The notes below the pieces were generated by a model. The model was given only the letters and a program-made list of their open reading frames with translations. It did not search any database and was not told the origin of the DNA. From the NCBI RefSeq assembly GCF_039654945.1, contig NW_027361840.1, positions 3,038,001 through 3,102,000 of the forward strand: a DNA stretch of 64,000 bases, in the 5' to 3' direction. Shown here piece by piece: positions 1-64,000 of this stretch. The stretch is from Dendrobates tinctorius (Eukaryota). The translations under genes and the position numbers were made by a program. Numbering within the stretch: the stretch's first letter is position 1; each line of letters starts with the position of its first letter.

Positions 1-70
1 TGGTGAACGAGCCACTATCCGCTGTTGTTGCAGGATCCAGTGTTCCAGATTGTGGAAAATGAAGATGTCA

Positions 71-474
71 AAGGGGGGAATGATAGGAACTGAAGGAGTT
101 AAATTGAGTTCTGTCTATGTTGCATTCTCTTGTTTAAAACCTTATCTGTTCTTCGAGGAGATGTCTCAGACATCTCCCTTGTGAACCAAGGTCAAATACC
201 TCTGCTTTTTCGCCTAAATGACTTTCTTTGTCTAAAACAAGTTGTAAAATCATTTGTACTGCGCATGTCTGTAAAATGTTTAAATTCTTTACTATAAAAG
301 ACGGAAGCCTAACTGATAAGCCAGAGGCGTCTTGAGAGGCATCCCGAGTGGTTTTATACAGCTGGTGTCTGTGTAGTTCTTCTCGACGGAGCTGATTTAA
401 TTAGAGACATATGATGCTTCACACCTAAGAACATCGGTCCTTCAGATGAAAGAGTAATCTGAGGGATCCCGACA
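71..474 (+). mobile_element. Polypurine tract and 3' LTR of an endogenous retrovirus-like/LTR element (LTR 81-474)
   Basis: AAGGGGGGAA (71-80) directly precedes TGATAGGA. The element ends TCCCGACA (imperfect terminal inverted repeat, TG...CA), with TATAAAA at ~293. At 475 the sequence switches abruptly to a MITE copy lacking its first 10 bp. Confidence 0.7.
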
Positions 475-741
475 ACACGATGCAGATTTGCAGCGGTTCC
501 GCAGCGGATTTTACCGCGCAGAAACGTTGCATTTCTGCATTGTGATGTACAGTAGCCTTAAAATCAATGTAAAAAAAAAACCGCTGTGCAGACGCTGCGG
601 ATTTTTCCGCGATACAAAATCCGCAGCATGTTACTTCTTTTGTGCGGTTTTCCATCTCCCCTGTCACCAAATCCGCAGGGGGAAAACCGCATCAAAAATG
701 GAAGAAATCCGCAGGACCAAAAAGCATGTGTGCACTCAGCC
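475..741. mobile_element. PIF/Harbinger-type MITE copy 1 (left TIR truncated by the LTR)
   Basis: Matches the 277-bp copies from ACACGATGCAG onward; right TIR ...TGTGCACTCAGCC followed by TCA. Confidence 0.85.
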
Positions 742-2744
742 TCAGGTGGAGAGACAGACCCCAAAAGACTGCAGAGAAATGTGGAGAGACAGACCCCAAA
801 AGACTGCAGAGAAAGGAGAGACAGACCCCAAAAGGTGGACAGACAGGCCTAAAAGACTCCAGAGAAAGGAGAGACAGACTCCAAAAGACTGCAGAGAAAG
901 GAGAGACAGACCCCAAAAGACTGCAGAGAAAGGAGAGACAGACCCCAAACTGGGGAGAGACAGACCCCAAAAGAAGATGAGAGACAGACCCCAAAAGACT
1001 TCAGCAAAAGGGGAGAGACAGACCCCAAAAGACTGCAGAGAAAGGGGGAGAGACAGACCCCAAAAGACTGCAAAGGAAGGTGGAGAGACAGACCCCAAAA
1101 GACTGCAGAGAAAGGAGAGACAGACCCCAAAAGACTGCAGAGAAAGGAGAGACAGACCCAAAAAGACTGCAGAGAAAGGTGGGAGAGACAGACCCCAAAA
1201 GACTGCAGAGAAAGGTGGGAGAGACAGACCCCAAAAGATTGCAGAGAAAGGTGGAGAGACAGACACCAAAAGACTGCAGAGAAAGGTGGGAGAGACGGAC
1301 CCAAAAAGACTGCAGAGAAAGGTGGGAGAGACAGACCCCAAAAGACTGCAGGGAAAAGAGGGAGAGAGACCCCACAAGACTGCAGAGAAAGAAGGAAGAG
1401 ACAGATGCCAAAAAACTGCAGAGAAAGGGGGAGAGACAGACCCCAAAAGACTGCAGAGAAATGTGGAAGAGACAGACCCCAAAAGATTGCAGAGAAAGGA
1501 GAGACAGACCCCAAAAGGTGGACAGACAGGCCTAAAAGACTCCAGAGAAAGGAGAGACAGACTCCAAAAGACTGCAGAGAAAGGAGAGACAGACCCCAAA
1601 AGACTGCAGAGAAAGGAGAGACAGACCCCAAACTGGGGAGAGACAGACCCCAAAAGAAGATGAGAGACAGACCCCAAAAGACTTCAGCAAAAGGGGAGAG
1701 ACAGACCCCAAAAGACTGCAGAGAAAGGGGGAGAGACAGACCCCAAAAGACTGCAAAGGAAGGTGGAGAGACAGACCCCAAAAGACTGCAGAGAAAGGAG
1801 AGACAGACCCCAAAAGACTGCAGAGAAAGGAGAGACAGACCCAAAAAGACTGCAGAGAAAGGTGGGAGAGACAGACCCCAAAAGACTGCAGAGAAAGGTG
1901 GGAGAGACAGACCCCAAAAGATTGCAGAGAAAGGTGGAGAGACAGACACCAAAAGACTGCAGAGAAAGGTGGGAGAGACGGACCCAAAAAGACTGCAGAG
2001 AAAGGTGGGAGAGACAGACCCCAAAAGACTGCAGGGAAAAGAGGGAGAGAGACCCCACAAGACTGCAGAGAAAGAAGGAAGAGACAGATGCCAAAAAACT
2101 GCAGAGAAAGGGGGAGAGACAGACCCCAAAAGACTGCAGAGAAAGGTGGGAGAGACAGACCCCAAAAGATTGCAGAGAAAGGAGAGACAGACCCAAAAAG
2201 ACTGCAGAGAAAGGTGGGAGAGACAGACACCAAAAGACTGCAGAGAAAGGTGGGAGAGACAGACCCCAAAAGATTGCAGAGAAAGGTGGAGAGACAGACA
2301 CCAAAAGACTGCAGAGAAAAGTGGGAGAGACGGACCCAAAAAGACTGCAGAGAAAGGTGGGAGAGACAGACCCCAAAAGACTGCAGAGAAAGGTGGGAGA
2401 GACAGACCCCAAAAGATTGCAGAGAAAGGTGGAGAGACAGACCCCAAAAGACTGCAGAGAAAGAAGGAAGAGACAGACGCCAAAAGACTGCAGAGAAAGG
2501 TGGGAGAGACGGACCCAAAAAGACTGAAGAGAAAGGTGGGAGAGACAGACCCCAAAAGACTGCAGAGAAAAGAGGGAGATAGACCCCACAAGACTGCAGA
2601 GAAAGGAAGAGACAGATGCCAAAAAACTGCAGAGAAAGGGGGAGAGACAGACCCCAAAAGACTGCAGAGAAAGGTGGGAGAGACAGACCCCAAAAGACTG
2701 CAGAGAAAGGTGGGAGAGACAGACCCCAAAAGACTCCAGAGTCA

Positions 2745-3021
2745 GGCTGTGTGCACACGATGCAGATTTGCAGCGGTTCCGCAGCGGATTTTACCGCGCA
2801 GAAACGTTGCATTTCTGCATTGTGATGTACAGTAGCCTTAAAATCAATGTAAAAAAAAAACCGCTGTGCAGACGCTGCGGATTTTTCCACGATACAAAAT
2901 CCGCAGCATGTTACTTCTTTTGTGCGGTTTTCCATCTCCCCTGTCACCAAATCCGCAGGGGGAAAACCGCATCAAAAATGGAAGAAATCCGCAGGACCAA
3001 AAAGCATGTGTGCACTCAGCC
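2745..3021. mobile_element. PIF/Harbinger-type MITE copy 2 (277 bp)
   Basis: TIRs GGCTGTGTGCACAC ... GTGTGCACTCAGCC with 3-bp TCA duplication on both sides; no coding capacity. Confidence 0.88.
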
Positions 3022-5425
3022 TCAGGTGGAGAGACAGACCCCAAAAGACTGCAGAGAAATGTGGAGAGACAGACCCCAAAAGACTGCAGAGAAATGTGGA
3101 GAGACAGACCCCAAAAGACTGCAGAGAAAGGAGAGACAGACCCCAAAAGGTGGACAGACAGGCCTAAAAGACTCCAGAGAAAGGAGAGACAGACTCCAAA
3201 AGACTGCAGAGAAAGGAGAGACAGACCCCAAAAGACTGCAGAGAAAGGAGAGACAGACCCCAAACTGGGGAGAGACAGACCCCAAAAGACTTCAGCAAAA
3301 GGGGAGAGACAGACCCCAAAAGACTGCAGAGAAAGGGGGAGAGACAGACCCCAAAAGACTGCAAAGGAAGGTGGAGAGACAGACCCCAAAAGACTGCAGA
3401 GAAAGGAGAGACAGACCCCAAAAGACTGCAGAGAAAGGAGAGACAGACCCAAAAAGACTGCAGAGAAAGGTGGGAGAGACAGACCCCAAAAGACTGCAGA
3501 GAAAGGTGGGAGAGACAGATCCCAAAAGATTGCAGAGAAAGGTGGAGAGACAGACACCAAAAGACTGCAGAGAAAGGTGGGAGAGACGGACCCAAAAAGA
3601 CTGCAGAGAAAGGTGGGAGAGACAGACCCCAAAAGACTGCAGGGAAAAGAGGGAGAGAGACCCCACAAGACTGCAGAGATAGAAGGAAGAGACAGATGCC
3701 AAAAAACTGCAGAGAAAGGGGGAGAGACAGACCCCAAAAGACTGCAGAGAAAGGTGGGAGAGACAGACCCCAAAAGATTGCAGAGAAAAGAGGGAGAGAG
3801 ATCCCACAAGACTGCAGAGAAGGTGGAGAGACAGACCCCAAAAGACTGCAGAGAAAGGTGGAGAGACAGACCCCAAAAGACTGCAGAGAAAGGTGGGAGA
3901 GACAGACCCCAAAAGATTGCAGAGAAAGGTGGAGAGACAGACACCAAAAGACTGCAGAGAAAGGTGGGAGAGACGGACCCAAAAAGACTGCAGAGAAAGG
4001 TGGGAGAGACAGACCCCAAAAGACTGCAGAGAAAAGAGGGAGAGAGACCCCACAAGACTGAAGAGAAAGAAGGAAGAGAGACCCCACAAGACTGCAGAGA
4101 AAGGTGGGAGAGACAGACCACAAAAGACTGCAGAGAAAAGAGAGAGAGACCCCACAAGACTGCAGAGAAAGAAGGAAGAGACAGACGCCAAAAGACTGCA
4201 GAGAAAGGGGGAGAGACAGACCCCAAAAGACTGCAGGGAAAGGGGGAGAGACAGACCCCAAAAGACTGCAGAGAAAGGTGGGAGAGACAGACCCCAAAAG
4301 ATTGCAGAGAAAAGAGGGAGAGAGATCCCACAAGACTGCAGAGAAAGGTAGGAGAGACAGACCACAAAAGACTGCAGAGAAAAGAGAGAGAGATCCCACA
4401 AGACTGCAGAGAAGGTGGAGAGACAGACCCCAAAAGACTGCAGAGAAAGGTGGAGAGACAGACCCCAAAAGACTGCAGAGAAAGGTGGGAGAGACAGACC
4501 CCAAAAGACTGCAGAGAAAGGTGGGAGAGACAGACCCCAAAAGACTCAAGAAAAAGGTGGAGAGACAGACCCCAAAAGACTGCAGAGAAAAGTGGCGAGA
4601 CAGACCCCAAAAGACTCCAGAGAAAGGTGGACAGACCCCAAAAGACTGCAGAGAAAGGTGGAGAGATAGACCCCAAAAGACTGCAGAGAAAGGAGAGACA
4701 GACCCCAAAAGACTGCAGAGTAAGAAGAGACCGACTCCAAAAGACTGCAGAGAAAGGTGGAGAGACAGACCCCAAGAAAAAGACTGCAGGGAAAGGTGGA
4801 GAGACAGACCCCACAAGACTGCAGAGAAAGTGGGAGAGACGGACCCAAAAAGACTGCAGGCAAAGTTGGGAGAGACAGACCTCAAAAGACTGCAGGGAAA
4901 GGTGGAGAGACAGACCCAACAAGACTGCAGAGAAAGGAGAGACAGACCCCAAAAGACTGCAGAGAAAGGAGAGACAGACCCCAAAAGACTGCAGAGAAAT
5001 GTGGGAGAGACAGATGCCAAAAGATTGCAGAGAAAGGTGGGCGAGACAGACCCCAAAAGACTGCAGAGAAAGGTGAGAGAGACAGACCCCAAAAGACTGC
5101 AGAGAAAGGGGGAGAGACAGACCCCAAAAGACTGCAGGGAAAGGTGGAGAGACAGACCCCTATAGACTGCAGAGAAAGGAGGGAGAGACAGACCTCAAAA
5201 GACTGCCGAGGAAGGTGGAGAGACAGACCACAAAAGACTGCAGAGAAAGGGGGAGAGACAGACCCCAAAAGACTGCATAGGAAGGTGGAGAGACAGACCT
5301 CAAAAGACTGCAGAGCAAGGTGGGAGAGACAGACCTCAAAAGACTGCAGAGAAAGGGAGAGAGACAGACCCCAAAAGACTGCAGAGAAAGGTGGGAGAGA
5401 CAGACTCCAAAAGACTCCATAGTCA

Positions 5426-5702
5426 GGCTGTGTGCACACGATGCAGATTTGCAGCGGTTCCGCAGCGGATTTTACCACGCAGAAACGTTGCATTTCTGCA
5501 TTGTGATGTACAGTAGCCTTAAAATCAATGTAAAAAAAAAACCGCTGTGCAGACGCTGCGGATTTTTCCGCGATACAAAATCCGCAGCATGTTACTTCTT
5601 TTGTGCAGTTTTCCATCTCCCCTGTCACCAAATCCGCAGGGGGAAAACCGCATCAAAAATGGAAGAAATCCGCAGGGCCAAAAAGCACGTGTGCACTCAG
5701 CC
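5426..5702. mobile_element. PIF/Harbinger-type MITE copy 3
   Basis: Same 277-bp sequence, TIRs and TCA flanks. Confidence 0.88.
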
Positions 5703-8070
5703 TCAGGTGGAGAGACAGACCCCAAAAGACTGCAGAGAAATGTGGAGAGACAGACCCCAAATGACTGCAGAGAAATGTGGAGAGACAGACCACAAAAGGT
5801 GGACAGACAGGCCTAAAAGACTCCAGAGAAAGGAGAGACAGACTCCAAAAGACTGCAGAGAAAGGAGAGACAGACCCCAAAAGACTGCAGAGAAAGGAGA
5901 GACAGACCCAAACTGGGGAGAGACAGACCCCAAAAGAAGATGAGAGACAGACCCCAAAAGACTTCAGCAAAAGGGGAGAGACAGACCCCAAAAGACTGCA
6001 GAGAAAGGGGGAGAGACAGACCCCAAAAGACTGCAAAGGAAGGTGGAGAGACAGACCCCAAAAGACTGCAGAGAAAGGAGAGACAGACCCAAAAAGACTA
6101 CAGAGAAAGGTGGGAGAGACAGACCCCAAAAGACTGCAGAGAAAGGTGGGAGAGACAGACCCCAAAAGATTGCAGAGAAAGGTGGAGAGACAGACACCAA
6201 AAGACTGCAGAGAAAGGTGGGAGAGACGGACCCAAAAAGACTGCAGAGAAAGGAGGGAGAGACAGACCCCAAAAGACTGCAGAGAAAAGAGGGAGAGCGA
6301 CCCCACAAGACTGAAGAGAAAGAAGGAAGAGAGACCCCACAAGACTGCAGAGAAAGAAGGAAGAGACAGATGCCAAAAGACTGCAGAGAAAGGGGGAGAG
6401 ACAGACCCCAAAAGATTGCAGAGAAAGGTGGGAGAGACAGACCCCAAAAGATTGCAGAGAAAAGAGGGAGAGAGATCCCACAAGACTGCAGAGAAGGTGA
6501 AGAGACAGACCCCAAAAGACTGCAGAGAAAGGTGGAGAGACAGATCCCAAAAGACTGCAGAGAAAGGTGGGAGAGACAGACCCCAAAAGATTGCAGAGAA
6601 AGGTGGAGAGACAGACACCCAAAGACTGCAGAGAAAGGTGGGAGAGACGGACCCAAAAAGACTGCAGAGAAAGGTGGGAGAGACAGACCCCAAAAGACTG
6701 CAGAGAAAAGAGGGAGAGAGACCCCACAAGACTGAAGAGAAAGAAGGAAGAGAGACCCCACAAGACTGCAGAGAAAGAAGGAAGAGACAGATGCCAAAAG
6801 ACTGCAGAGAAAGGGGGAGAGACAGACCCCAAAAGACTGCAGGGAAAGGGGGAGAGACAGACCCCAAAAGACTGCAGAGAAAGGTGGGAGAGACAGACCC
6901 CAAAAGATTGCAGAGAAAAGAGGGAGAGAGATCCCACAAGACTGCAGAGAAAGGTGGATAGACAGACCCCAAAAGACTGCAGAGAAAGGTGGGAGAGACA
7001 GACCACAAAAGACTGCAGAGAAAAGAGAGAGAGACCCCACAAGACTGCAGAGAAAGAAGGAAGAGACAGACGCCAAAAGACTGCAGAGAAAGGGGGAGAG
7101 ACAGACCCCAAAAGACTGCAGAGAAAGGTGGGAGAGACAGACCCCAAAAGACTGCAGAGAAAGGTGGGAGAGACAGACCCCAAAAGACTCAAGAAAAAGG
7201 TGGAGAGACAGACCCCAAAAGACTGCAGAGAAAAGTGGCGAGACAGACCCCAAAAGACTCCAGAGAAAGGTGGATAGACAGACCCCAAAAGACTGCAGAG
7301 AAAGGTGGAGAGATAGACCCCAAAAGACTGCAGAGAAAGGAGAGACAGACCCCAAAAGACTGCAGAGTAAGAAGAGACCGACTCCAAAAGACTGCAGAGA
7401 AAGGTGGAGAGACAGACCCCAAGAAAAAGACTGCAGGGAAAGGTGGAGAGACAGACCCCACAAGACTGCAGAGAAAGTGGGAGAGACAGACCCCAAAAGA
7501 CTGCAGGCAAAGTTGGGAGAGACAGACCTCAAAAGACTGCAGGGAAAGGTGGAGACAGACCCCACAAGACTGCAGAGAAAGGAGAGACAGACCCCAAAAG
7601 ACTGCAGAGAAAGGAGAGACAGACCCCAAAAGACTGCAGAGAAATGTGGGAGAGTCAGATGCCAAAAGATTGCAGAGAAAGGTGGGCGAGACAGACCCCA
7701 AAAGACTGCAGAGAAAGGTGAGAGAGACAGACCCCAAAAGACTGCAGAGAAAGGGGGAGAGACAGACCCCAAAAGACTGCAGGGAAAGGTGGAGAGACAG
7801 ACCCCTATAGACTGCAGAGAAAGGAGGGAGAGACAGACCTCAAAAGACTGCAGAGGAAGGTGGAGAGACAGACCACAAAAGACTGCAGAGAAAGGGGGAG
7901 AGACAGACCCCAAAAGACTGCATAGGAAGGTGGAGAGACAGACCTCAAAAGACTGCAGAGCAAGGTGGGAGAGACAGACCTCAAAAGACTGCAGAGAAAG
8001 GGGGAGAGACAGACCCCAAAAGACTGCAGAGAAAGGTGGGAGAGACAGACCCCAAAAGACTCCAGAGTCA

Positions 8071-8347
8071 GGCTGTGTGCACACGATGCAGATTTGCAGC
8101 GGTTCCGCAGCGGATTTTACCACGCAGAAACGTTGCATTTCTGCATTGTGATGTACAGTAGCCTTAAAATCAATGTAAAAAAAAAACCGCTGTGCAGACG
8201 CTGCGGATTTTTCCGCGATACAAAATCCGCAGCATGTTACTTCTTTTGTGCGGTCTTCCATCTCCCCTGTCACCAAATCCGCAGGGGGAAAACCGCATCA
8301 AAAATGGAAGAAATCCGCAGGGCCAAAAAGCACGTGTGCACTCAGCC
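8071..8347. mobile_element. PIF/Harbinger-type MITE copy 4
   Basis: Same 277-bp sequence, TIRs and TCA flanks. Confidence 0.88.
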
Positions 8348-9736
8348 TCAGGTGGAGAGACAGACCCCAAAAGACTGCAGAGAAAAGAGAGAGAGAGACC
8401 CCACAAGACTGCAGAGAAAGAAGGAAGAGACAGACGCCAAAAGACTGCAGAGAAAGGGGGAGAGACAGACCCCAAAAGACTGCAGAGAAAGGTGGGAGAG
8501 ACAGACCCCAAAAGACTGCAGAGAAAGGTGGGAGAGACAGACCCCAAAAGACTCAAGAAAAAGGTGGAGAGGCAGACCCCAAAAGACTGCAGAGAAAAGT
8601 GGCGAGACAGACCCCAAAAGACTCCAGAGAAAGGTGGATAGACAGACCCCAAAAGACTGCAGAGAAAGGTGGAGAGATAGACCCCAAAAGACTGCAGAGA
8701 AAGGAGAGACAGACCCCAAAAGACTGCAGAGTAAGAAGAGACCGACTCCAAAAGACTGCAGAGAAAGGTGGATAGACAGACCCCAAAAGACTCCAGAGAA
8801 AGGTGGATAGACAGACCCCAAAAGACTGCAGAGAAAGGTGGAGAGACAGACCCCAAAAGACTGCAGAGAAAGGAGAGACAGACCCCAAAAGACTGCAGAG
8901 AAAGGAGAGACAGACCCCAAAAGACTGCAGAGAAAGGTGGGAGAGACAGACCCCAAAAGACTCCAGAGAAAGGTGGATAGACAGACCCCAAAAGACTGCA
9001 GAGAAAGGTGGAGAGACAGACCCCAAAAGACTGCAGAGAAAGGAGAGACAGACCCCAAAAGACTGCAGAGAAAGGTGGAGAGACAGACCCCAAGAAAAAG
9101 ACTGCAGGGAAAGGTGGAGAGACAGACCCCACAAGACTGCAGAGAAAGTGGGAGAGACAGACCCCAAAAGACTGCAGGCAAAGTTGGGAGAGACAGACCT
9201 CAAAAGACTGCAGGGAAAGGTGGAGAGACAGACCCCACAAGACTGCAGAGAAAGGAGAGACAGACCCCAAAAGACTGCAGAGAAAGGAGAGACAGACCCC
9301 AAAGACTGCAGAGAAATGTGGGAGAGACAGATGCCAAAAGATTGCAGAGAAAGGTGGGCGAGACAGACCCCAAAAGACTGCAGAGAAAGGCGAGAGACCC
9401 CAAAAGACTGCAGAGAAAGGGGGAGAGACAGACCCCAAAAGACTGCAGGGAAAGGTGGAGAGACAGACCCCTATAGACTGCAGAGAAAGGAGGGAGAGAC
9501 AGACCTCAAAAGACTGCAGAGGAAGGTGGAGAGACAGACCACAAAAGACTGCAGAGAAAGGGGGAGAGACAGACCCCAAAAGACTGCATAGGAAGGTGGA
9601 GAGACAGACCTCAAAAGACTGCAGAGCAAGGTGGGAGAGACAGACCTCAAAAGACTGCAGAGAAAGGGGGAGAGACAGACCCCAAAAGACTGCAGAGAAA
9701 GGTGGGAGAGACAGACCCCAAAAGACTCCAGAGTCA

Positions 9737-10013
9737 GGCTGTGTGCACACGATGCAGATTTGCAGCGGTTCCGCAGCGGATTTTACCGCGCAGAAACGTT
9801 GCATTTCTGCATTGTGATGTACAGTAGCCTTAAAATCAATGTAAAAAAAAAACCGCTGTGCAGACGCTGCGGATTTTTCCGCGATACAAAATCCGTAGCA
9901 TGTTACTTCTTTTGTGCGGTTTTCCATCTCCCCTGTCACCAAATCCGCAGGGGGAAAACCGCATCAAAAATGGAAGAAATCCGCAGGGCCAAAAAGCACG
10001 TGTGCACTCAGCC
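9737..10013. mobile_element. PIF/Harbinger-type MITE copy 5
   Basis: Same 277-bp sequence, TIRs and TCA flanks. Confidence 0.88.
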
Positions 10014-11912
10014 TCAGGTGGAGAGACAGACCCCAAAAGACTGCAGAGAAATGTGGAGAGACAGACCCCAAATGACTGCAGAGAAATGTGGAGAGACAGA
10101 CCCCAAAAGACTGCAGAGAAAGGAGAGACAGACCCCAAAAGACTGCAGAGAAAGGAGAGACAGACCCCAAAAGGTGGAGAGACAGGCCTAAAAGACTCCA
10201 GAGAAAGGAGAGACAGACTCCAAAAGACTGCAGAGAAAGGAGAGACAGACCCCAAAAGACTGCAGAGAAAGGAGAGACAGACACCAAAAGATTGAAGAGA
10301 AAGGTGGGAGAGACAGACACCAAACGACTGCAGAGAAATGTGGAGAGACAGACCCCAAAAGACTCCAGAGAAAGGAGAGACAGACCCCAAAAGACTGCAG
10401 AGAAAGGAGAGACAGACTCCAAAAGACTGCAGAGAAAGGTGGAGAGACAGACCCCAAAAGACTGCAGAGAAAGGTGGAGAGACAGACCCCAAAAGACTGC
10501 AGAGAAAGGTGGGAGAGACAGACCCCAAAAGATTGCAGAGAAAGGTGGAGAGAGAGACACCAAAAGACTGCAGAGAAAGGTGGGAGAGACGGACCCAAAA
10601 AGACTGCAGAGAAAGGTGGGAGAGACAGACCCCAAAAGACTGCAGAGAAAAGAGGGAGAGACAGACCCCACAAGACTGCAGAGAAAGAAGGAAGAGACAG
10701 ATGCCAAAAGACTGCAGAGAAAGGGGTAGAGACAGACCCCAAAAGACTGCAGGGAAAGGGGGAGAGACAGACCCCAAAAGACTGCAGAGAAAGGTGGGAG
10801 AGACAGACCCCAAAAGATTGCAGAGAAAAGAGGGAGAGAGATCCCACAAGACTGCAGAGAAAGGTGGAGAGACAGACCCCAAAAGACTGCAGAGAAAGGT
10901 GGGAGAGACAGACCACAAAAGACTGCAGAGAAAAGAGAGAGAGACCCCACAAGACTGCAGAGAAAGAAGGAAGAGACAGACGCCAAAAGACTGCAGAGAA
11001 AGGGGGAGAGACAGACCCCAAAAGACTGCAGAGAAAGGTGGGAGAGACAGACCCCAAAAGACTGCAGAGAAAGGTGGGAGAGACAGACCCCAAAAGACTC
11101 AAGAAAAAGGTGGAGAGACAGACCCCAAAAGACTGCAGAGAAAAGTGGCGAGACAGACCCCAAAAGGCTCCAGAGAAAGGTGGATAGACAGACCCCAAAA
11201 GACTGCAGAGAAAGGTGGAGAGACAGACCCCAAAAGACTGCAGAGAAAGGAGAGACAGACCCCAAAAGACTGCAGAGTAAGAAGAGACCGACTCCAAAAG
11301 ACTGCAGAGAAAGGTGGAGAGACAGACCCCAAAAAAAAGACTGCAGGGAAAGGTGGAGAGACAGACCCCACAAGTCTGCAGAGAAAGTGGGAGAGACAGA
11401 CCCCAAAAGACTGCAGGCAAAGTTGGGAGAGACAGACCTCAAAAGACTGCAGGGAAAGGTGGAGAGACAGACCCCACAAGACTGCAGAGAAAGGAGAGAC
11501 AGACCCCAAAAGACTGCAGAGAAAGGAGAGACAGACCCCAAAAGACTGCAGAGAAATGTGGGAGAGACAGATGCCAAAAGATTGCAGAGAAAGGTGGGCG
11601 AGACAGACCCCAAAAGACTGCAGAGAAAGGTGAGAGAGACAGACCCCAAAAGACTGCAGAGAAAGGGAGAGAGACAGACCCCAAAAGACTGCAGGGAAAG
11701 GTGGAGAGACAGACCCCTATAGACTGCAGAGAAAGGAGGGAGAGACAGACCCCAAAAGACTGCATAGGAAGGTAGAGAGACAGACCTCAAAAGACTGCAG
11801 AGCAAGGTGGGAGAGACAGACCTCAAAAGACTGCAGAGAAAGGGGGAGAGACAGACCCCAAAAGACTGCAGAGAAAGGTGGGAGAGACAGACCCCAAAAG
11901 ACTCCATACTCA

Positions 11913-12189
11913 GGCTGTGTGCACACGATGCAGATTTGCAGCGGTTCCGCAGCGGATTTTACCGCGCAGAAACGTTGCATTTCTGCATTGTGATGTACAG
12001 TAGCCTTAAAATCAATGTAAAAAAAAAACCGCTGTGCAGACGCTGCGGATTTTTCCACGATACAAAATCCGCAGCATGTTACTTCTTTTGTGCGGTCTTC
12101 CATCTCCCCTGTCACCAAATCCGCAGGGGGAAAACCGCATCAAAAATGGAAGAAAGCCGCAGGGCCAAAAAGCACGTGTGCACTCAGCC
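11913..12189. mobile_element. PIF/Harbinger-type MITE copy 6
   Basis: Same 277-bp sequence, TIRs and TCA flanks. Confidence 0.88.
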
Positions 12190-14088
12190 TCAGGTGGAGA
12201 GACAGACCCCAAAAGACTGCAGAGAAATGTGGAGAGACAGACCCCAAATGACTGCAGAGAAATGTGGAGAGACAGACCCCAAAAGACTGCAGAGAAAGGA
12301 GAGACAGACCCCAAAAGACTGCAGAGAAAGGAGAGACAGACCCCAAAAGGTGGAGAGACAGGCCTAAAAGACTCCAGAGAAAGGAGAGACAGACTCCAAA
12401 AGACTGCAGAGAAAGGAGAGACAGACCCCAAAAGACTGCAGAGAAAGGAGAGACAGACACCAAAAGATTGAAGAGAAAGGTGGGAGAGACAGACACCAAA
12501 CGACTGCAGAGAAATGTGGAGAGACAGACCCCAAAAGACTCCAGAGAAAGGAGAGACAGACCCCAAAAGACTGCAGAGAAAGGAGAGACAGACTCCAAAA
12601 GACTGCAGAGAAAGGTGGAGAGACAGACCCCAAAAGACTGCAGAGAAAGGTGGAGAGACAGACCCCAAAAGACTGCAGAGAAAGGTGGGAGAGACAGACC
12701 CCAAAAGATTGCAGAGAAAGGTGGAGAGAGAGACACCAAAAGACTGCAGAGAAAGGTGGGAGAGACGGACCCAAAAAGACTGCAGAGAAAGGTGGGAGAG
12801 ACAGACCCCAAAAGACTGCAGAGAAAAGAGGGAGAGACAGACCCCACAAGACTGCAGAGAAAAAAGGAAGAGACAGATGCCAAAAGACTGCAGAGAAAGG
12901 GGTAGAGACAGACCCCGAAAGACTGCAGGGAAAGGGGGAGAGACAGACCCCAAAAGACTGCAGAGAAAGGTGGGAGAGACAGACCCCAAAAGATTGCAGA
13001 GAAAAGAGGGAGAGAGATCCCACAAGACTGCAGAGAAAGGTGGAGAGACAGACCCCAAAAGACTGCAGAGAAAGGTGGGAGAGACAGACCACAAAAGACT
13101 GCAGAGAAAAGAGAGAGAGACCCCACAAGACTGCAGAGAAAGAAGGAAGAGACAGACGCCAAAAGACTGCAGAGAAAGGGGGAGAGACAGACCCCAAAAG
13201 ACTGCAGAGAAAGGTGGGAGAGACAGACCCCAAAAGACTGCAGAGAAAGGTGGGAGAGACAGACCCCAAAAGACTCAAGAAAAAGGTGGAGAGACAGACC
13301 CCAAAAGACTGCAGAGAAAAGTGGCGAGACAGACCCCAAAAGGCTCCAGAGAAAGGTGGATAGACAGACCCCAAAAGACTGCAGAGAAAGGTGGAGAGAC
13401 AGACCCCAAAAGACTGCAGAGAAAGGAGAGACAGACCCCAAAAGACTGCAGAGTAAGAAGAGACCGACTCCAAAAGACTGCAGAGAAAGGTGGAGAGACA
13501 GACCCCAAAAAAAAGACTGCAGGGAAAGGTGGAGAGACAGACCCCACAAGTCTGCAGAGAAAGTGGGAGAGACAGACCCCAAAAGACTGCAGGCAAAGTT
13601 GGGAGAGACAGACCTCAAAAGACTGCAGGGAAAGGTGGAGAGACAGACCCCACAAGACTGCAGAGAAAGGAGAGACAGACCCCAAAAGACTGCAGAGAAA
13701 GGAGAGACAGACCCCAAAAGACTGCAGAGAAATGTGGGAGAGACAGATGCCAAAAGATTGCAGAGAAAGGTGGGCGAGACAGACCCCAAAAGACTGCAGA
13801 GAAAGGTGAGAGAGACAGACCCCAAAAGACTGCAGAGAAAGGGAGAGAGACAGACCCCAAAAGACTGCAGGGAAAGGTGGAGAGACAGACCCCTATAGAC
13901 TGCAGAGAAAGGAGGGAGAGACAGACCCCAAAAGACTGCATAGGAAGGTGGAGAGACAGACCTCAAAAGACTGCAGAGCAAGGTGGGAGAGACAGACCTC
14001 AAAAGACTGCAGAGAAAGGGGGAGAGACAGACCCCAAAAGACTGCAGAGAAAGGTGGGAGAGACAGACCCCAAAAGACTCCAGAGTCA

Positions 14089-14365
14089 GGCTGTGTGCAC
14101 ACGATGCAGATTTGCAGCGGTTCCGCAGCGGATTTTACCGCGCAGAAACGTTACATTTCTGCATTGTGATGTACAGTAGCCTTAAAATCAATGTAAAAAA
14201 AAAACCGCTGTGCAGACGCTGCGGATTTTTCCGCGATACAAAATCCGCAGCATGTTACTTCTTTTGTGCGGTTTTCCATCTCCCCTGTCACCAAATCCGC
14301 AGGGGGAAAACCGCATCAAAAATGGAAGAAATCCGCAGGGCCAAAAAGCATGTGTGCACTCAGCC
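14089..14365. mobile_element. PIF/Harbinger-type MITE copy 7
   Basis: Same 277-bp sequence, TIRs and TCA flanks. Confidence 0.88.
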
Positions 14366-16232
14366 TCAGGTGGAGAGACAGACCCCAAAAGACTGCAGAG
14401 AAATGTGGAGAGACAGACCCCAAATGACTGCAGAGAAATGTGGAGAGACAGACCCCAAAAGACTGCAGAGAAAGGAGAGACAGACCCCAAAAGACTGCAG
14501 AGAAAGGAGAGACAGACCCCAAAAGGTGGAGAGACAGGCCTAAAAGACTCCAGAGAAAGGAGAGACAGACTCCAAAAGACTGCAGAGAAAGGAGAGACAG
14601 ACCCCAAAAGACTGCAGAGAAAGGAGAGACAGACACCAAAAGATTGAAGAGAAAGGTGGGAGAGACAGACACCAAACGACTGCAGAGAAATGTGGAGAGA
14701 CAGACCCCAAAAGACTCCAGAGAAAGGAGAGACAGACCCCAAAAGACTGCAGAGAAAGGAGAGACAGACTCCAAAAGACTGCAGAGAAAGGTGGAGAGAC
14801 AGACCCCAAAAGACTGCAGAGAAAGGTGGAGAGACAGACCCCAAAAGACTGCAGAGAAAGGTGGGAGAGACAGACCCCAAAAGATTGCAGAGAAAGGTGG
14901 AGAGAGAGACACCAAAAGACTGCAGAGAAAGGTGGGAGAGACGGACCCAAAAAGACTGCAGAGAAAGGTGGGAGAGACAGACCCCAAAAGACTGCAGAGA
15001 AAAGAGGGAGAGACAGACCCCACAAGACTGCAGAGAAAGAAGGAAGAGACAGATGCCAAAAGACTGCAGAGAAAGGGGTAGAGACAGACCCCAAAAGACT
15101 GCAGGGAAAGGGGGAGAGACAGACCCCAAAAGACTGCAGAGAAAGGTGGGAGAGACAGACCCCAAAAGATTGCAGAGAAAAGAGGGAGAGAGATCCCACA
15201 AGACTGCAGAGAAAGGTGGAGAGACAGACCCCAAAAGACTGCAGAGAAAGGTGGGAGAGACAGACCACAAAAGACTGCAGAGAAAAGAGAGAGAGACCCC
15301 ACAAGACTGCAGAGAAAGAAGGAAGAGACAGACGCCAAAAGACTGCAGAGAAAGGGGGAGAGACAGACCCCAAAAGACTGCAGAGAAAGGTGGGAGAGAC
15401 AGACCCCAAAAGACTGCAGAGAAAGGTGGGAGAGACAGACCCCAAAAGACTCAAGAAAAAGGTGGAGAGACAGACCCCAAAAGACTGCAGAGAAAAGTGG
15501 CGAGACAGACCCCAAAAGGCTCCAGAGAAAGGTGGATAGACAGACCCCAAAAGACTGCAGAGAAAGGTGGAGAGACAGACCCCAAAAGACTGCAGAGTAA
15601 GAAGAGACCGACTCCAAAAGACTGCAGAGAAAGGTGGAGAGACAGACCCCAAAAAAAAGACTGCAGGGAAAGGTGGAGAGACAGACCCCACAAGTCTGCA
15701 GAGAAAGTGGGAGAGACAGACCCCAAAAGACTGCAGGCAAAGTTGGGAGAGACAGACCTCAAAAGACTGCAGGGAAAGGTGGAGAGACAGACCCCACAAG
15801 ACTGCAGAGAAAGGAGAGACAGACCCCAAAAGACTGCAGAGAAAGGAGAGACAGACCCCAAAAGACTGCAGAGAAATGTGGGAGAGACAGATGCCAAAAG
15901 ATTGCAGAGAAAGGTGGGCGAGACAGATCCCAAAAGACTGCAGAGAAAGGTGAGAGAGACAGACCCCAAAAGACTGCAGAGAAAGGGAGAGAGACAGACC
16001 CCAAAAGACTGCAGGGAAAGGTGGAGAGACAGACCCCTATAGACTGCAGAGAAAGGAGGGAGAGACAGACCCCAAAAGACTGCATAGGAAGGTGGAGAGA
16101 CAGACCTCAAAAGACTGCAGAGCAAGGTGGGAGAGACAGACCTCAAAAGACTGCAGAGAAAGGGGGAGAGACAAACCCCAAAAGACTGCAGAGAGAGGTG
16201 GGAGAGACAGACCCCAAAAGACTCCAGAGTCA

Positions 16233-16509
16233 GGCTGAGTGCACACGATGCAGATTTGCAGCGGTTCCGCAGCGGATTTTACCGCGCAGAAACGTTGCGT
16301 TTCTGCATTGTGATGTACAGTAGCCTTAAAATCAATGTAAAAAAAAAACCGCTGTGCAGACGCTGCGGATTTTTCCGCGATACAAAATCCGCAGCATGTT
16401 ACTTCTTTTGTGCGGTTTTCCATCTCCCCTGTCACCAAATCCGCAGGGGGAAAACCGCATCAAAAATGGAAGAAATCCGCAGGGCCAAAAAGCACGTGTG
16501 CACTCAGCC
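16233..16509. mobile_element. PIF/Harbinger-type MITE copy 8 (perfect 15-bp TIRs)
   Basis: GGCTGAGTGCACACG ... CGTGTGCACTCAGCC is an exact inverted pair; TCA flanks. Confidence 0.9.
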
Positions 16510-17389
16510 TCAGGTGGAGAGACAGACCCCAAAAGACTGCAGAGAAATGTGGAGAGACAGACCCCAAAAGACTGCAGAGAAAGGAGAGACAGACCCCAAA
16601 AGACTGCAGAGAAAGGAGAGACAGACCCCAAAAGGTGGAGAGACAGGCCTAAAAGACTCCAGAGAAAGGAGAGACAGACTCCAAAAGACTGCAGAGAAAG
16701 GAGAGACAGACCCCAAATGACTGCAGAGAAAGGAGAGACAGACACCAAACGACTGCAGAGAAATGTGGAGAGACAGACCCCAAAAGGTGGAGACAGGCCT
16801 AAAAGACTCCAGAGAAAGGAGAGACAGACCCCAAAAGACTGCAGAGAAAGGAGAGACAGACCCCAAATGACTGCAGAGAAAGGAGAGACAGACCCCAAAA
16901 GACTGCAGAGAAAGGAGAGACAGACCCCAAAAGGTGGAGACAGGCCTAAAAGACTCCAGAGAAAGGAGAGACAGACTCCAAAAGACTGCAGAGAAAGGAG
17001 AGACAGACCCCAAAAGACTGCAGAGAAAGGAGAGACAGACCCCAAAAGACTGCAGAGAAAGGTGGAGAGACAGACACCAAACGACTGCAGAGAAATGTGT
17101 AGAGACAGACCCCAAAAGACTCCAGAGAAAGGAGAGACAGACCCCAAAAGACTGCAGAGAAAGGAGAGACAGACTCCAAAAGACTGCAGAGAAAGGAGAG
17201 ACAGACTCCAAAAGACTGCAGAGAAAGGAGAGACAGACCCCAAAAGACTGCAGAGAAATGTGGAGAGACAGACCCCAAAAGACTCCAGAGAATGGAGAGA
17301 CAGACCCCAAAAGACTCCAGAGAAAGGAGAGACAGACCCCAGAAGACTGCAGAGAAAGGAGAGACAGACTCCAAAAGACTGCAGAGAAA

Positions 17390-17637
17390 GGTGGAGAGAC
17401 AGACCCCAGAAGACTGCAGGGTAAGGTGGTCCTATGAAGTACTGACTAAGGGGCTGAATACTAATGCACGGCACAATGTTCGGGTTTATAGTTGTAGAAT
17501 AATTCTTAATCCTTCCTGTATTATTTCCTTTTCTTTGTATCATAGAAAATCCCAATAGAATCCATAGAGGTTTGTGGGTGTAATGTGAGAGCTGAGGAGA
17601 AGTTCCCGGGGAATGAAGACTTTTTCAAGGCGCCTGT
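17390..17637 (+). mobile_element. Decayed 3' end of a Tc1-like DNA transposon (transposase C-terminus, 3' UTR, right TIR)
   Basis: The last monomer reads ETDPRRL, then GGT GGT CCT ATG AAG TAC TGA (GGPMKY*, 17425-17445). This is followed by GGGGCTGAATACTAATGCAC, AAAATCCCAATAGAA, GGTTTGTGGGTGTAA and GAATGAAGACTTTTTCAAGGCGCCTGT, resembling the right end of vertebrate Tc1 elements (...GAATACTTTTTCAAGGCACTG-TA, recalled, not searched). Confidence 0.8.
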
Positions 17638-19596
17638 CCAGTAACTCTCGGCCCTTCTATAGACAGAGGACGAGGCTCGCACTGATCCTGGGGACCGTCC
17701 TCCTCCGGAGCCTCCTCAGCAGAAGACATGGCACCCGGGGCACAGACTACAAGTCAGTGTGGATGGCGGCTCCATAGTGACTGTGTGGACAGAGGTCAGC
17801 GCCACCAGACAGAGCGACATCAGCTGTGCAGACAGTGAGAGGAACACAACCGCAGGAAGGGAAGGCGAGCAGTGTGAGAAGCCGCACCGTGAGAACACTC
17901 ACCAAGCCCTGACGCCGGAAGACAAGTGGTCGGGGGCTCAGCAGAAGAGAGGCCTGGAGGTAGGAACACGAGGCCAAACTGAGGGGGAAGGGGCCACTAG
18001 ACAAAGAGAGGGGCGTGAGCCGAGCCTGGGAGACCCCCGGCCATGACATCACCAGCCCCGGCCATAGGACTCTCCTCAGCACCTCAGGACCCGGTCAGTG
18101 CTGCTCATAGGGCGACTGACGCCGCGGCAGCCATGTTGGATAAGGGAACACTGCCCTGAGCCAGCAGCAGTGCTGAGGTAAAATGTTCACACAGAGGCGA
18201 CAACAACACCAGCAATATAAGAAAACGGCGTCCACAGTGATATGGAAGGACAGAAATGATACAATCCACACACGAAACCGCCAAATCGCCCCACAAGCCC
18301 CAATACGGCCATTCAGCGACACACAAAGAAGTCGCAGCTCTCAGAAGGAGGCGGCGGAGAAACTCATTTATTTTTGCAAAATATGATTTTAATGTGTAAA
18401 AGTAGCAAAGCGTAAAAAGATATAAATGTTTTACCGCTACAATCATACTGACCCGAAGAATAAATCGCTGTCGTCACTTTTACCGCAAAATAACATATAA
18501 AAACAATAAGTGAGTTTCTGTTTTGCATTTGATAAATCTGAAGAAAAAGCGATCACTAAATATTATCCCCCGAAACAGTCACAAGAAATCTCCAACAAAT
18601 GTGACAGCTCTCCGAGCATGTCTAGTGTGTGACAGCAGCAAAACATAGAAGCCATAGACATCCAGCATCGCTGTAATCACAGCACCCCGAAGAATATATC
18701 CGCCTCATCTCTGACACCGCACGAGGAGCGGCGTAACGATAAGAGCTAATCTTCTACTGCACTTTATTTGCTCATTTTACCTCCCAGAAACAGCGCTCCT
18801 TCCTTCTCAGCCCTGACGTGTGGCCCGGGCCGCCATCAGGGCATTACTGCCCTATCTGCTGTATGGGGCCTGATGAGCAGCGGCACACAGGGGAGCCCGC
18901 AGGGCCCCGTCTCTTGTGGTTCTGCTCACCAGGCCCCATCGTACACTAATGTGCTGTGCGCTGTGGGCCTGTGGTGCACACATCTGTGAGATTGGGGACC
19001 TCCGGAGTGAACCCTCAGGACTGCGACGACGAACCTCCCTCGGGCGAGCTGAACCAGGTGGACCACCCCCTATACAGGGAGTGTTAGGGGCAGACCCAAG
19101 GGAGACTATCGCCGCGGAAGCTGATACCTGGGAACAGGCGGGTAAGTAAGCAAGCAGGGAAATACAGGCGACCAGATGAGAGATGACGACGGCCACAGGG
19201 ATGGTTGCTGAGACTGCAGGAATGGTGATGGACGGCAGACGAAACTGGCAATGGCGGCAGGCAGGAATCGGTACAGGACAGGACACCAGAGCAGGAGGAC
19301 GGAAGCAGGAGCGGACTGGATCTAGGAGGGAACACAGGAAAGTCACAAACAGGCAGAACAGCGGAGACCACGGAGAGGTAGACAGCGCAGGAATGAAGAG
19401 GAACGCAGGAGCGCGTGGACCCGATACCACAAATGATAGGCAGTGAGCACAGGGTGAGACTGCCTGATATAGGACATGCTAGAGGACTTCCGGGTCAGAG
19501 TGCAGCTGAACCATGGGACCAGGAGATAGGATGCCAGGTCTAGGGGGCATATCTAACAGTACGCCTGTGTGCAGGAGCCGGCCGCCGGAGGGATGA

Positions 19597-22500
19597 TTAA
19601 CAGGTGCCAGCAGAGGGGGCGGAGCGAGAGGAGCGGACGCGCCGGAGAGGCCCAGACGGCATGGAGACAAGGGAGGCTGCGGGGACCGAAGGCGCCGCAA
19701 GCGGTGGAGCTGCGGCATCGGCAGATGGAGAGCCCCGGGCAGAGGTAGCAGAGACAGCGGCGGTCGGGACAGCAGACGCCGCAGAGCGGACCAGAGCCGG
19801 AGAGGTCAGCGTGCCAGGCGCCGGGGAGGAGGTGAGCGTGACAGTACCCCCCTCCTTACGCCCCCTCTTCTTAAGACCGGAAAGGAATCTGGCCAAGATA
19901 CGAGGAGCCTGAATGTTTTCCCGAGGCTCCCAAGATCTCTCCTCTGGACTGAAACCCTTCCAATCAATTAAGAAGAGGGTCTTACCTCTGGACTTTTTCA
20001 TTGCGAGAATGTCTTTGACTTCAAAGACATCTTGTGCAGATACAGGCGGAGGAGGACAGCCGGTGGTGGGGTGAAAGTGGTTAAGTACGACAGGCTTTAA
20101 GAGAGAGACATGAAAATAATTTGGAATCCTGAGCGAAGCGGGAAGTTTCAGCTTGTAGGCCACATCGTTGATACGGGCCGAGACTTCAAACGGACCTATA
20201 TACCGAGGACCCAGTTTATACGAGGGTTGCTTCAGGCGGACGAACTTAGAAGACAGCCATACTTTATCTCCGGGCTGGTACCGTGGGGAATCCAGGCGTC
20301 TCTTATCGGCATGTCTCTTGATCCGGCCTTGAGCCTGATCAAGCGCGGTTTTGGTCTGCCAGACCCTGGAGAACTCGGTCAGAAGATCGGCCGCCGGCAC
20401 ACCCGAGACAGGACGTACCGGCAAAGGAACACCTGGATGTTGCCCGTAGACAATAAAGAAGGGTGACTTGGAGGAGGACTCACTGTAGTGATTGTTGTAG
20501 GTGAATTCGGCCCATGAGAGCATGTTGGACCAGTCGTTCCGGTGAGCATTGGAAAAATGCCAGAGATAGGTCACGAGAATTTGATTTGTTCGTTCTGCCT
20601 GGCCGTTAGTCTGAGGATGGTAGGAAGAGGAGAAATCCAACGTTACCTCCATCATACGGCATACGGCCCTCCAAAACTGCGAGGTGAACTGCACCCCTCT
20701 GTCGGAAACGATATGCTTGGGGAAGCCATGAATCCTGAAGATATGGGTGACGAAAATCCTTGCTAATTCTGGTGCGGAGGGTAACCCTGGCAACGGAATA
20801 AAGTGGGCCATTTTGGAAAATCGATCCACCACAACTAAGATGACGGTGTGACCAGAAGATCGTGGCAGTTCAGTAACAAAGTCCATTGCGATGTGTCGCC
20901 ATGGGACCGAAGGAATCGGAAGCGGGTGCAAGAGACCAGACGGTAGATGCCGAGGAACTTTGTTTCTGGCACATGACGGGCAGGAGGCGATAAAACTTCG
21001 GACATCCTGAAGAAGAGATGGCCACCAGTAAAAACGAGAGATGAGAAGGAGTGTCTTCTTGAGACCCACGTGGCCGGCCAGCTTGGAGGCATGACCCCAG
21101 CGTAACACTCGCTTTCTCTCGCTCTCTTGCACAAAGGTCTTACCGGGCGGCAAAGAAGTCAGGTTAATGGGTGCAACCATGATGACTTTACCAGGATCTA
21201 CGATGTGTGATGGCTCTTCCTCAGTATTGGAGACCAGAAAAGACCTGGATAGCGCGTCAGCTTTCAGATTCTTGTCACCGGGACGGAAATGAAGCTCAAA
21301 ATCGAACTGGGCAAAGAACAGCGACCATCTGGCTTGTCGGGGGTTAAGTCTTTGTGCTGACTGGATGTATGCCAGATTCTTGTGGTCGGTGTAGATTTTA
21401 AACGGATGAACAGCTCCTTCCAGGAGATACCGCCACTCCTCCAAAGCCAGTTTGATGGCGATTAGCTCTCTGTCACCAATAGTGTAGTTTCTCTCGGTGG
21501 TGGAAAACATTTTAGAGAAAAAACTACAGGTGAGTAGCCGGCCGGAGGAAGATTTCTGGGAAAGAACTACCCCGGCTCCTATGGCTGACGCGTCCACCTC
21601 GAGAATGAATGGTTTGTTAATTTCAGGACGATGTAGGACGGGAGCGGAAGCGAAAGCTTGTCTCAACGACAGAAAAGCATCCTTGGCCTCCGAGGACCAG
21701 AGGTGAGGGTTGGCTCCTTTACGGGTCAAGGCGGAGATAGGAGCGGTCAGAGAAGAAAAGTGTGGGATGAATTGCCGGTAATAGCAAACCCAAGGAATCG
21801 TTGGATCGCCTTGACTCCCTGAGGACGCGGCCATTTGAGCACGGCGGACACTTTTTCAGGGTCCATGCGGAGACCCGAGTCGGAAATGATGTATCCCAAG
21901 AATGGCAGGGACGACTGCTCGAAGGCGCATTTCTCGAGTTTGGCGTAGAGACGCTGCTCTCTTAAGCGTAGTAAGACTTGGCGAACGTCTTTTCTGTGGG
22001 AAGCCAGGTCCGCGGAGAACACAAGGATATCGTCCAAATACACCACCACACAGGAGTAGAGAAAGTCTCGAAAGACGTTGTTGACAAACTCCTGGAATAC
22101 CGCGGGAGCATTGCACAGGCCAAAGGGCATGACTAAATATTCATAGTGGCCGTCTCGGGTATTGAAGGCGGTCTTCCATTTATCTCCGGGGCGAATGCGG
22201 ATCAGATTATACGCCCCTCGGAGATCCAGTTTAGTGAAGACTCGTGCTCCCCGTAGACGGTCGAATAGCTCCGGAATGAGAGGCAACGGATATTTGTTTT
22301 TGATGGTGATATCGTTGAGACCCCGGTAATCAATGCAGGGACGAAGGGAACCATCCTTCTTCTTGACGAAAAAGAACCCTGCTCCTGCCGGTGAAGATGA
22401 TTTGCGAATGAAACCTCTGGCCAGGTTCTCTTGGATGTATTCGGTCATAGCCTGGGTCTCGGAGGGAGATAGAGGATAGATCCGACCACGGGGTGGAGTA

Positions 22501-24098: not shown

Positions 24099-25149
24099 GG
24101 CCTGACTATACTGTGAGTTTGGGGGCCTCCGGAGTGAACCCTCAGGACCGCGATGACGAACCTCCCTCGGGCGAGCTGAACCAGGTGGACCACCCCCTAT
24201 ACAGGGAGCGTTAGGGGCAGACCCAAGGAAGACTATCGCCGCGGAAGCTGATACCTAGGAACAGCCGGGTAAGTAAGCAAGCAGGGAAATACAGACGACC
24301 AGATGAGAGATGACGACGGCCACAGGGATGGTTGCTGAGACTGCGGTAATGGTGATGGACGGCAGACGAGACTGGCAATGGCGGCAGGCAGGAACCGGTA
24401 CAGGACAGGACACCGGAGCAGGAGGACGGAAGCAGGAGCGGACTGGATCTAGGAGGGAACACAGGAAAGTCACAAACAGGAAGAACAGCGGAGGCCACGG
24501 AGAGGTAGACAGCGCAGGAACGAAGAGGAACGCAGGAGCGCGTGGACCCGATACCACAAATGATAGGCAGTGAGCAGAGGGTGAGACTGCCTGATATAGG
24601 ACATGCTAGAGGACTTCCGGGTCAGAGTGCAGCTGAACCATGGGACCAGGAGATAGATACGCCCCCTAGACCTGGCATCCTAACAGTACGCCTGTGTGAA
24701 GGAGCAGGAGCCGGCCGCCAGAGGGATGATTGACAGGTGCCAGCAGAGGGGGCGGAGCGAGAGGAGCGGACGCGCTGGAGAGGCCCAGACGGCATGGAGA
24801 CACGGGAGGCGGCGGGGACCGAAGGCGCCGCAAGCGGTGGAGCTGCGGCATCGGCAGATGGAGAGCCCCGGGCAGAGGTAGCAGAGACAGCGGCGGTCGG
24901 GACAGCGGCCGCAGACGCCGCAGAGCAGACCAGAGCCAGAGAGGTGAGCGTGCCAGGTGCCGGGGAGGAGGTGAGCGTGACATCATCGGTGTCGGAGCCC
25001 GGGAGCTTTCTCGGAGTTGTGCACGGCCATCATTCCCTGACAGCTGCGCAGCTCCGACTGCGTCCGCCCACCCTGGACTGCCGCGTACCCGATAGCGTCA
25101 TCACATACGCGCCGACATGTATGAGTACACTGTGACCAGAAATGGAGCT

Positions 25150-32990: not shown

Positions 32991-33104
32991 TATAGGTTAA
33001 ACGGGTCACCCCTGAGGCCGAGGGCCGCCACTCGGGAGGTGAATCCAAAATCCCAGAGGGACAGTCACAATGGGTCTCCTGATTTGTCTTCAAATGCCCA
33101 TATA

Positions 33105-34325: not shown

Positions 34326-34327
34326 TA

Positions 34328-62978: not shown

Positions 62979-64000
<1,022 letters not shown>

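Follow-up and report, generated by a model that had tools for sequence, protein, structure and literature searches.

Can the birth of a satellite from a transposable element (TE) still be read at a single locus? The beginnings of satellites are usually inferred from faint similarity. The question is raised by a tandem array in the frog Dendrobates tinctorius, which lies in a 64,000-nucleotide stretch of the genome (assembly GCF_039654945.1, contig NW_027361840.1, positions 3,038,001 to 3,102,000; hereafter, the window) and runs directly into the 3' end of a Tc1 transposon. An original prediction, made from the letters of the window, held that this ~17-kb satellite grew out of the last codons of a Tc1 transposase and is still attached to its parent element. 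We estimate at about 0.85 the probability of the following account: an old seed array arose from the C-terminal codons of a Tc1 transposase and was later expanded locally to 17 kb.

Two sequences served for comparison. The first, L001, carries an unrelated natural Tc1 as reference and is the one contig obtained when a metagenome collection was scanned with a degenerate pattern of the Tc1 coding end; the degenerate Tc1 C-terminal pattern gave no match in a viral contig collection. The second, L002, is a 25-kb locus of Ranitomeya imitator (GCA_958301615.1), reached through a word search with a 450-amino-acid open reading frame (ORF) of the array. This search returned one protein, an unnamed R. 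imitator product (P0001) whose first ~190 residues are repeat-encoded, and a second word search with a 167-amino-acid array ORF gave no match.

The array and its Tc1 tail

The array and the adjoining end of the Tc1 element comprise the following features; coordinates are those of the window.

742–17426, plus strand: tandem array of ~420 units of 32, 35 or 36 bp, in the orientation of the Tc1 tail
16510–17426, plus strand: terminal block of the array beside the Tc1 tail, delimited by Tandem Repeats Finder rows 16516–17426 and 16937–17426 and by the identities of higher-order unit 8
17385–17424, plus strand: last unit, which passes directly into the coding end of Tc1 (three-way alignment; global alignment to L001)
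17425–17445, plus strand: last transposase codons, GGPMKY and stop (TGA at 17443–17445), from the sequence and its alignment with GGSTKY-stop of L001
17446–17599, plus strand: remnant of the Tc1 3' untranslated region (UTR), from identity to the R. imitator tail, alignment to L001 and a word depth above that of the flank
17600–17637, plus strand: right terminal inverted repeat (TIR) of Tc1, aligned with the L001 terminal repeat and with the right arm of the 24-nt TIR of L002

Tandem Repeats Finder reported the dominant tandem array at 746–17426, with periods of 35, 71 and, towards the right end, 32 bp. An anchor search found 412 head-to-tail units, spaced mostly by 35 (143), 36 (127) or 32 bp (80), and no array units in the window beyond 753–17398; the figure of ~420 is the number that fits the non-spacer length of the array. 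The consensus units of the individual length classes are 94–98% conserved and differ from each other solely at the unit junction. The terminal block consists mostly of the 32-bp unit variant, has a 131-bp sub-periodicity and shows the highest divergence of all blocks.

The monomer translates as (G)ETDPKRLQ in one frame and as AEKGG in the next, as had been read from the letters, and the peptides GETDPKRLQRKV and TAEKGG recur all through the ORF list of the array. Long ORFs are present in all frames because the repeat is purine-rich (purine fraction of 72% on the plus strand) and poor in stop codons. We regard them as a by-product of composition; nothing suggests a cellular function. Some short motifs of the monomer may be loosely reminiscent of a histone 3' end. 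An Rfam search of positions 14000–18000 gave chance-level matches only, and the histone stem-loop was unmatched at E values up to 10. We consider it very improbable that the unit goes back to the histone H1 3'-processing signal with a merely coincidental or secondary likeness to Tc1, given its close match to Tc1 codons and the Tc1 sequence that borders it on both sides in L002 and on the right in the window.

At its right end the array does not stop in unrelated DNA. It passes unbroken into GGPMKY and the stop codon, then into ~150 nt of Tc1 3' UTR with an inner repeat-like motif at about 17450–17469, and finally into the terminal repeat ending at 17637, exactly as predicted. The methionine of GGPMKY in the window stands against a threonine codon, ACA, at 17434–17436 in other copies of the same genome. 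A Tc1 match of this tail had been set beforehand as a test of the idea, and it was found: the segment 17427–17645 matches the TIR-bounded Tc1 tail of L002 with an E value of 1e-23. Alignment of the tail with the 3' end of L001 is collinear at the stop codon, the inner repeat-like motif and the terminal repeat, and blastn recovers this similarity as two collinear pieces (E values of 2e-5 and 2e-4). The junction between array and tail is not an assembly artefact, since contigs of X1 (the likely source sample) and X9 (an independent study) cross positions 17380–17800 with one or two differences.

The claim that the satellite is still attached to its parent therefore holds for the 3' end, where the last ~215 bp of a Tc1 remain, but not for the body, which is absent from the window and for which the complete parent is found at L002. 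When the whole L001 element was compared with window positions 1–17700, matches were restricted to the 35-nt monomer segment and the tail. No second copy of the tail and no Sleeping-Beauty-type body were found elsewhere in the window. The bases that follow the right TIR in the window are CC, and the left end is gone. In L002, TA precedes the left TIR and the right end is truncated.

Origin of the monomer

The translation of L001 ends in KLIKTYPKRLAAVIAAKGGSTKY followed by a stop codon. Its two ORF pieces match the catalytic domain of SB100X (5cr4) with E values of 1e-38 and 2.5e-22, through the last residue. A Pfam search assigned no family to the larger ORF piece and gave a sub-threshold DDE_3 match only for the smaller one. 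Judged by its sequence, L001 is a genuine Sleeping-Beauty-type Tc1.

The best blastn match of each length-class consensus in L001 falls on the codons for ...TYPKRL (E values of 2e-5 to 8e-5), and the KGG part of the monomer is collinear with L001 in the same comparison. In a gapped alignment of the 34-nt monomer core with L001, 32 of 33 aligned positions are identical and 13 nt of L001 are left unmatched. This agrees with the proposal that a ~35-bp piece spanning ETYPKRL...KGG was amplified after an internal deletion. The unmatched stretch is bordered by short TGCAG direct repeats, and the net loss of 13 nt places ETDPKRLQ and KGG in different reading frames. Compared with a normal Tc1, the last unit of the array, which is fused to the Tc1 coding end, lacks the same 13 nt that are missing from every other monomer.

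The position of this alignment is specific. Among 1412 windows of L001, both strands included, the one at the Tc1 codons ranks first, and none of 5000 shuffled monomers reached the score of the monomer against L001; the monomer aligns to the codons just upstream of the Tc1 stop, which had been set beforehand as a second test of the idea. Derivation of the monomer from the C-terminal codons of a Tc1 transposase is strongly supported by these comparisons. The array is a TE-derived tandem repeat in that its unit is homologous to a defined TE segment and the array is continuous with its parent at the homologous position.

The collinear match also bears on the idea that a Tc1 derivative took up a tandem repeat that already existed, the resemblance to transposase codons being secondary. 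Such a capture has been discussed for a frog element, the Xenopus miDNA4 repeat, a Tc1/mariner-type MITE (miniature inverted-repeat transposable element), in two reviews (PMC12628747, PMC9659126). A foreign repeat, however, would not be expected to match native Tc1 codons collinearly, and the unit found here matches, exactly at the collinear position, native coding sequence of Tc1 elements whose hosts are distant (L001 and SB100X). We consider capture very improbable, and birth from the transposase codons themselves remains the preferred explanation.

The complete parent in Ranitomeya imitator and other copies

The R. imitator locus contains the following features.

9141–9164 and 11877–11900 of L002: perfect 24-nt inverted repeats
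9274–10049 of L002: decayed transposase body, aligned to L001 over 813 nt (E value of 5e-125)
10031–11723 of L002: 35-bp array of 48 units
11727–11901 of L002: tail, matching the window tail with an E value of 1e-23

The locus thus preserves the whole parent, in the order TIR, body, array, tail and TIR. The body stops inside the first monomer. The element measures 2.8 kb and keeps ~0.85 kb of decayed transposase body; its size and this body set it apart from a short non-coding MITE.

The same arrangement decides against a chance juxtaposition of an unrelated satellite and a truncated Tc1 end. TE fragments are everywhere in this genome, and a neighbourhood of this kind could in itself be accidental. 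Yet L002 repeats the juxtaposition, there with the transposase body bordering the array on its opposite flank, and both the permutation and the positional tests described above oppose chance, so that this explanation is effectively refuted.

Further copies are seen in D. tinctorius itself. Additional contigs of this species cross the array/tail junction at 8–20% divergence. In some contigs a motif of the Tc1-body type (AAAGCTGG...) stands directly before a monomer, and in one Tc1 relative 12 additional nt are retained precisely where the deletion lies. The dispersal of the family is thereby documented at two loci plus a few junction contigs. Word depth of the monomer relative to a flank contig is ~1400–2000-fold in X1 and ~300-fold in X5 and X6; these ratios are depths and not copy numbers, and the flank contig could be repetitive too. 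The only conclusion that we draw from them is that the units in the genome are no fewer than those in the window.

Did the repeat arise where it now lies? Strict birth in place would mean that a Tc1 at this very site made the array, and that L002 is a rearranged orthologue or an independent event. The position and the orientation of the array fit the tail, as such a history would require. Against it stands, first, the dissimilarity of the surroundings: within the 25 kb of L002 the flanks of the window are unmatched and no MITE is present, and only array and tail are alike. Second, the two tails differ by 24% (75.8% identity, Jukes-Cantor distance of 0.29), yet both arrays hold the same derived unit, with the 13-nt gap and a T-to-G change. 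Third, several diverged junction contigs are present in one genome. We therefore regard birth at this site as unlikely. The shared derived monomer, together with tails that are only 75.8% identical, indicates instead that the seed array is old and that the large array in the window was formed by a recent expansion at this locus. The original statement that the monomer was amplified in place accordingly stands in one sense, the array being at the homologous position of a Tc1, and not in another: the comparisons suggest that the birth of the repeat was probably not at this chromosomal site, where the later expansion happened.

Higher-order structure and expansion in the window

The array is not the uniform satellite that had been described. 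Its extent, 742–17426, agrees with the ~17 kb proposed, but a 277-bp MITE-like element breaks it up at seven internal places, and an eighth copy is cut at the left edge. These eight copies mark higher-order units of 1.7–2.7 kb.

475–741, plus strand: MITE-like spacer, first copy (from an alignment of the eight copies and a blastn search of the window with one of them)
2745–3021, plus strand: MITE-like element of 277 bp with imperfect TIRs of ~19 nt (copy alignment, blastn)
5426–5702, 8071–8347, 9737–10013, 11913–12189, 14089–14365 and 16233–16509: further MITE-like copies in a constant monomer context
9832–16327, plus strand: the three youngest higher-order units (2176, 2176 and 2144 bp), from pairwise MAFFT identities

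In the first copy the left inverted repeat is 10 nt short at its start; this copy adjoins unrelated DNA at 1–474. No spacer copies were found in the window outside the array. The copies are 98.3–99.0% identical to each other and their flanking monomers are identical, which points to one insertion that was co-amplified with ~2 kb of array. A possible 3-bp duplication, TCA, may be present at both ends of the spacer.

Matches to a 61-nt probe taken from the left flank lie at positions 560, 2840, 5521, 8166, 9832, 12008, 14184 and 16328 and delimit eight higher-order units of 2280, 2681, 2645, 1666, 2176, 2176, 2144 and 1099 bp. Pairwise MAFFT alignment of the eight units gave identities of 99.4–99.5% among units 5–7 and of 97–98% between these and units 2–3, and both edge units are only 92–95% like the remainder. 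Such a gradient is expected where unequal exchange keeps the central part of an array homogeneous.

The DNA at 1–474 contains a TATA-like motif; its last bases, ...CA, lie at the breakpoint of the cut first MITE-like copy. It could be the end of a long terminal repeat (LTR) element inserted into the MITE. If so, a continuation of the array upstream of the window, and even of the Tc1 body, is possible.

Proposed origin of the array

The source is the codons of a Sleeping-Beauty-type Tc1 that encode ...E-T-Y-P-K-R-L, together with the K-G-G codons immediately preceding the stop. From the stretch flanked by the TGCAG direct repeats, between the PKRL and KGG codons, about 13 nt were lost, and the resulting segment of ~35 bp would have been doubled head to tail in a Tc1 that was already inactive. 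This first duplication was probably due to slippage or misrepair at short similar motifs, AAAGCTG... upstream and AAAGGTGG downstream, and further growth may have proceeded by unequal exchange. The array thus occupies the former site of the last codons, between the body and the stop codon, UTR and TIR, an arrangement that is complete in L002 and visible on the right side only in the window. The seed array is old and present at more than one locus, as the second locus and the several diverged junction contigs show. At the locus of the window, one MITE-like element entered the array, and MITE plus ~2 kb of array was afterwards multiplied, probably by unequal crossing-over, into eight copies; the identity pattern shows that the centre was amplified last. 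The Tc1 body to the left of the array in the window may have been deleted or displaced by an insertion.

Several points weigh against this account. No monomer retains the junction predicted from the GGT microhomology, and the exact breakpoint model is speculative for that reason. An undecayed frog parent of the same subfamily was not among the sequences compared. One external locus was found, L002, and it could be a paralogue or a rearranged orthologue. Finally, neither a Tc1 body nor a left TIR is present to the left of the array in the window, so that this copy shows no left-side attachment.

If the origin from transposase codons is accepted, the way in which the seed array reached several sites may be considered. 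It is possible, although we put this forward tentatively, that the array-bearing Tc1 with intact TIRs acted as a non-autonomous element, mobilised in trans, that carried a minisatellite seed to several dendrobatid sites. The 17-kb array would then be one such seed that was expanded later, and the seeding of satellites by transposons could be traced locus by locus.

Relation to known systems

The closest known system is miDNA4 of Xenopus tropicalis (Scalvenzi and Pollet), a Tc1/mariner MITE with a satellite motif, as outlined in PMC12628747, PMC9659126 and PMC12054243. It resembles the present case in its frog genome, in a TIR-bounded element of the Tc1/mariner type, in an internal tandem repeat of variable length, from a single unit up to longer arrays, and in serving as a model for transposon-seeded satellites. 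In the same accounts, miDNA4 is a short non-coding MITE whose repeat has been interpreted as captured or as having arisen in non-coding DNA, whereas the unit described here is the transposase's own C-terminal coding DNA and the R. imitator element keeps a decayed full-length body.

Satellites derived from TE ORFs are also on record. Table 1 of PMC9659126 lists PROsat and Pvc20, from ORF2 of LINE-1, and CficCl-61-40, from a CACTA transposase. As in these three, the tandem unit studied here is homologous to TE coding sequence. In the listed cases the link to the TE is mostly one of sequence similarity, whereas the present array has kept its place inside the parent, at the homologous position; its unit is also much shorter (35 bp), and its source is a Tc1 transposase.

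Internal repeats that build satellites are likewise found in Tetris, a foldback element of Drosophila virilis (PMC4079207), and in DTC84, a MITE of Donax trunculus (PMC3879986). Both share with the present family the use of a DNA transposon's internal tandem repeats as building blocks of longer arrays. Their repeats come from non-coding DNA at the ends or in the centre of non-autonomous elements, and their arrays are dispersed at high copy number; for the present family, dispersal is shown only for two loci and a few junction contigs. In Sleeping Beauty and the Tc1-like transposons of fishes and frogs (SB100X, 5cr4), the homologues of the tail and the monomer are the final ~20 codons, the 3' UTR and the TIR. 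Unlike that group, the copy in the window is a 215-bp end fragment with an array in place of the C-terminal codons.

A search of the full-text literature, which did not cover subscription journals, returned no account of this repeat or of a satellite made from Tc1 transposase codons. The array is apparently a frog minisatellite born from Tc1 codons and an undescribed example of an already known repeat origin. Current views are left unchanged, since TE-derived and even ORF-derived satellites are already documented in reviews. The value of the locus lies in a path that can be read from the parent codons through the small deletion, the first duplication, the seed array between body and stop and the MITE insertion to the amplification to 17 kb. 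In giant frog genomes rich in Tc1 elements, it can serve well both for teaching and as a test of how a TE turns into a satellite.

Other features of the two loci

A complete-looking Tc1 element lies on the minus strand of the window at 33084–34330, flanked by inverted ends of ~30 nt. It carries an uninterrupted 346-amino-acid transposase (ORF 33137–34177) with the HTH_Tnp_Tc3_2 and DDE_3 domains, which matches SB100X with an E value of 3e-46, and may be a young or active copy. This protein had been used for comparison in the original prediction. The minus-strand ORF does end with the protein end quoted there, but the element belongs to another subfamily. It was rejected as the parent of the array because its DNA shows no similarity to the tail and its 3' end, with a short UTR, is different.

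At L002, the gene model of P0001 (10001–14984) joins the ~190 minisatellite-encoded residues to Gypsy gag and reverse transcriptase exons, a fusion of array and gag-pol that is probably an annotation artefact. Directly downstream of this model, a 437-bp tandem repeat is present in 4.2 copies with 98% identity (14990–16848). Positions 248–3773 of the same locus consist of ~3.5 kb of very C-rich low-complexity DNA, which could be a degenerate repeat of telomere-like or C-rich type, or else an artefact of assembly or reads.

To the right of the Tc1 tail in the window, direct repeats at 18984–19779 and 24111–24912, ~5.13 kb apart and 96–97% identical, bracket a Gypsy-type gag-pol on the minus strand; this pair marks a fairly young LTR retrotransposon. 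At the far end, positions 63273–63997 hold an array with an 84-bp period, 8.6 copies and 92% identity, which encodes C2H2 zinc-finger units and runs off the end of the window.

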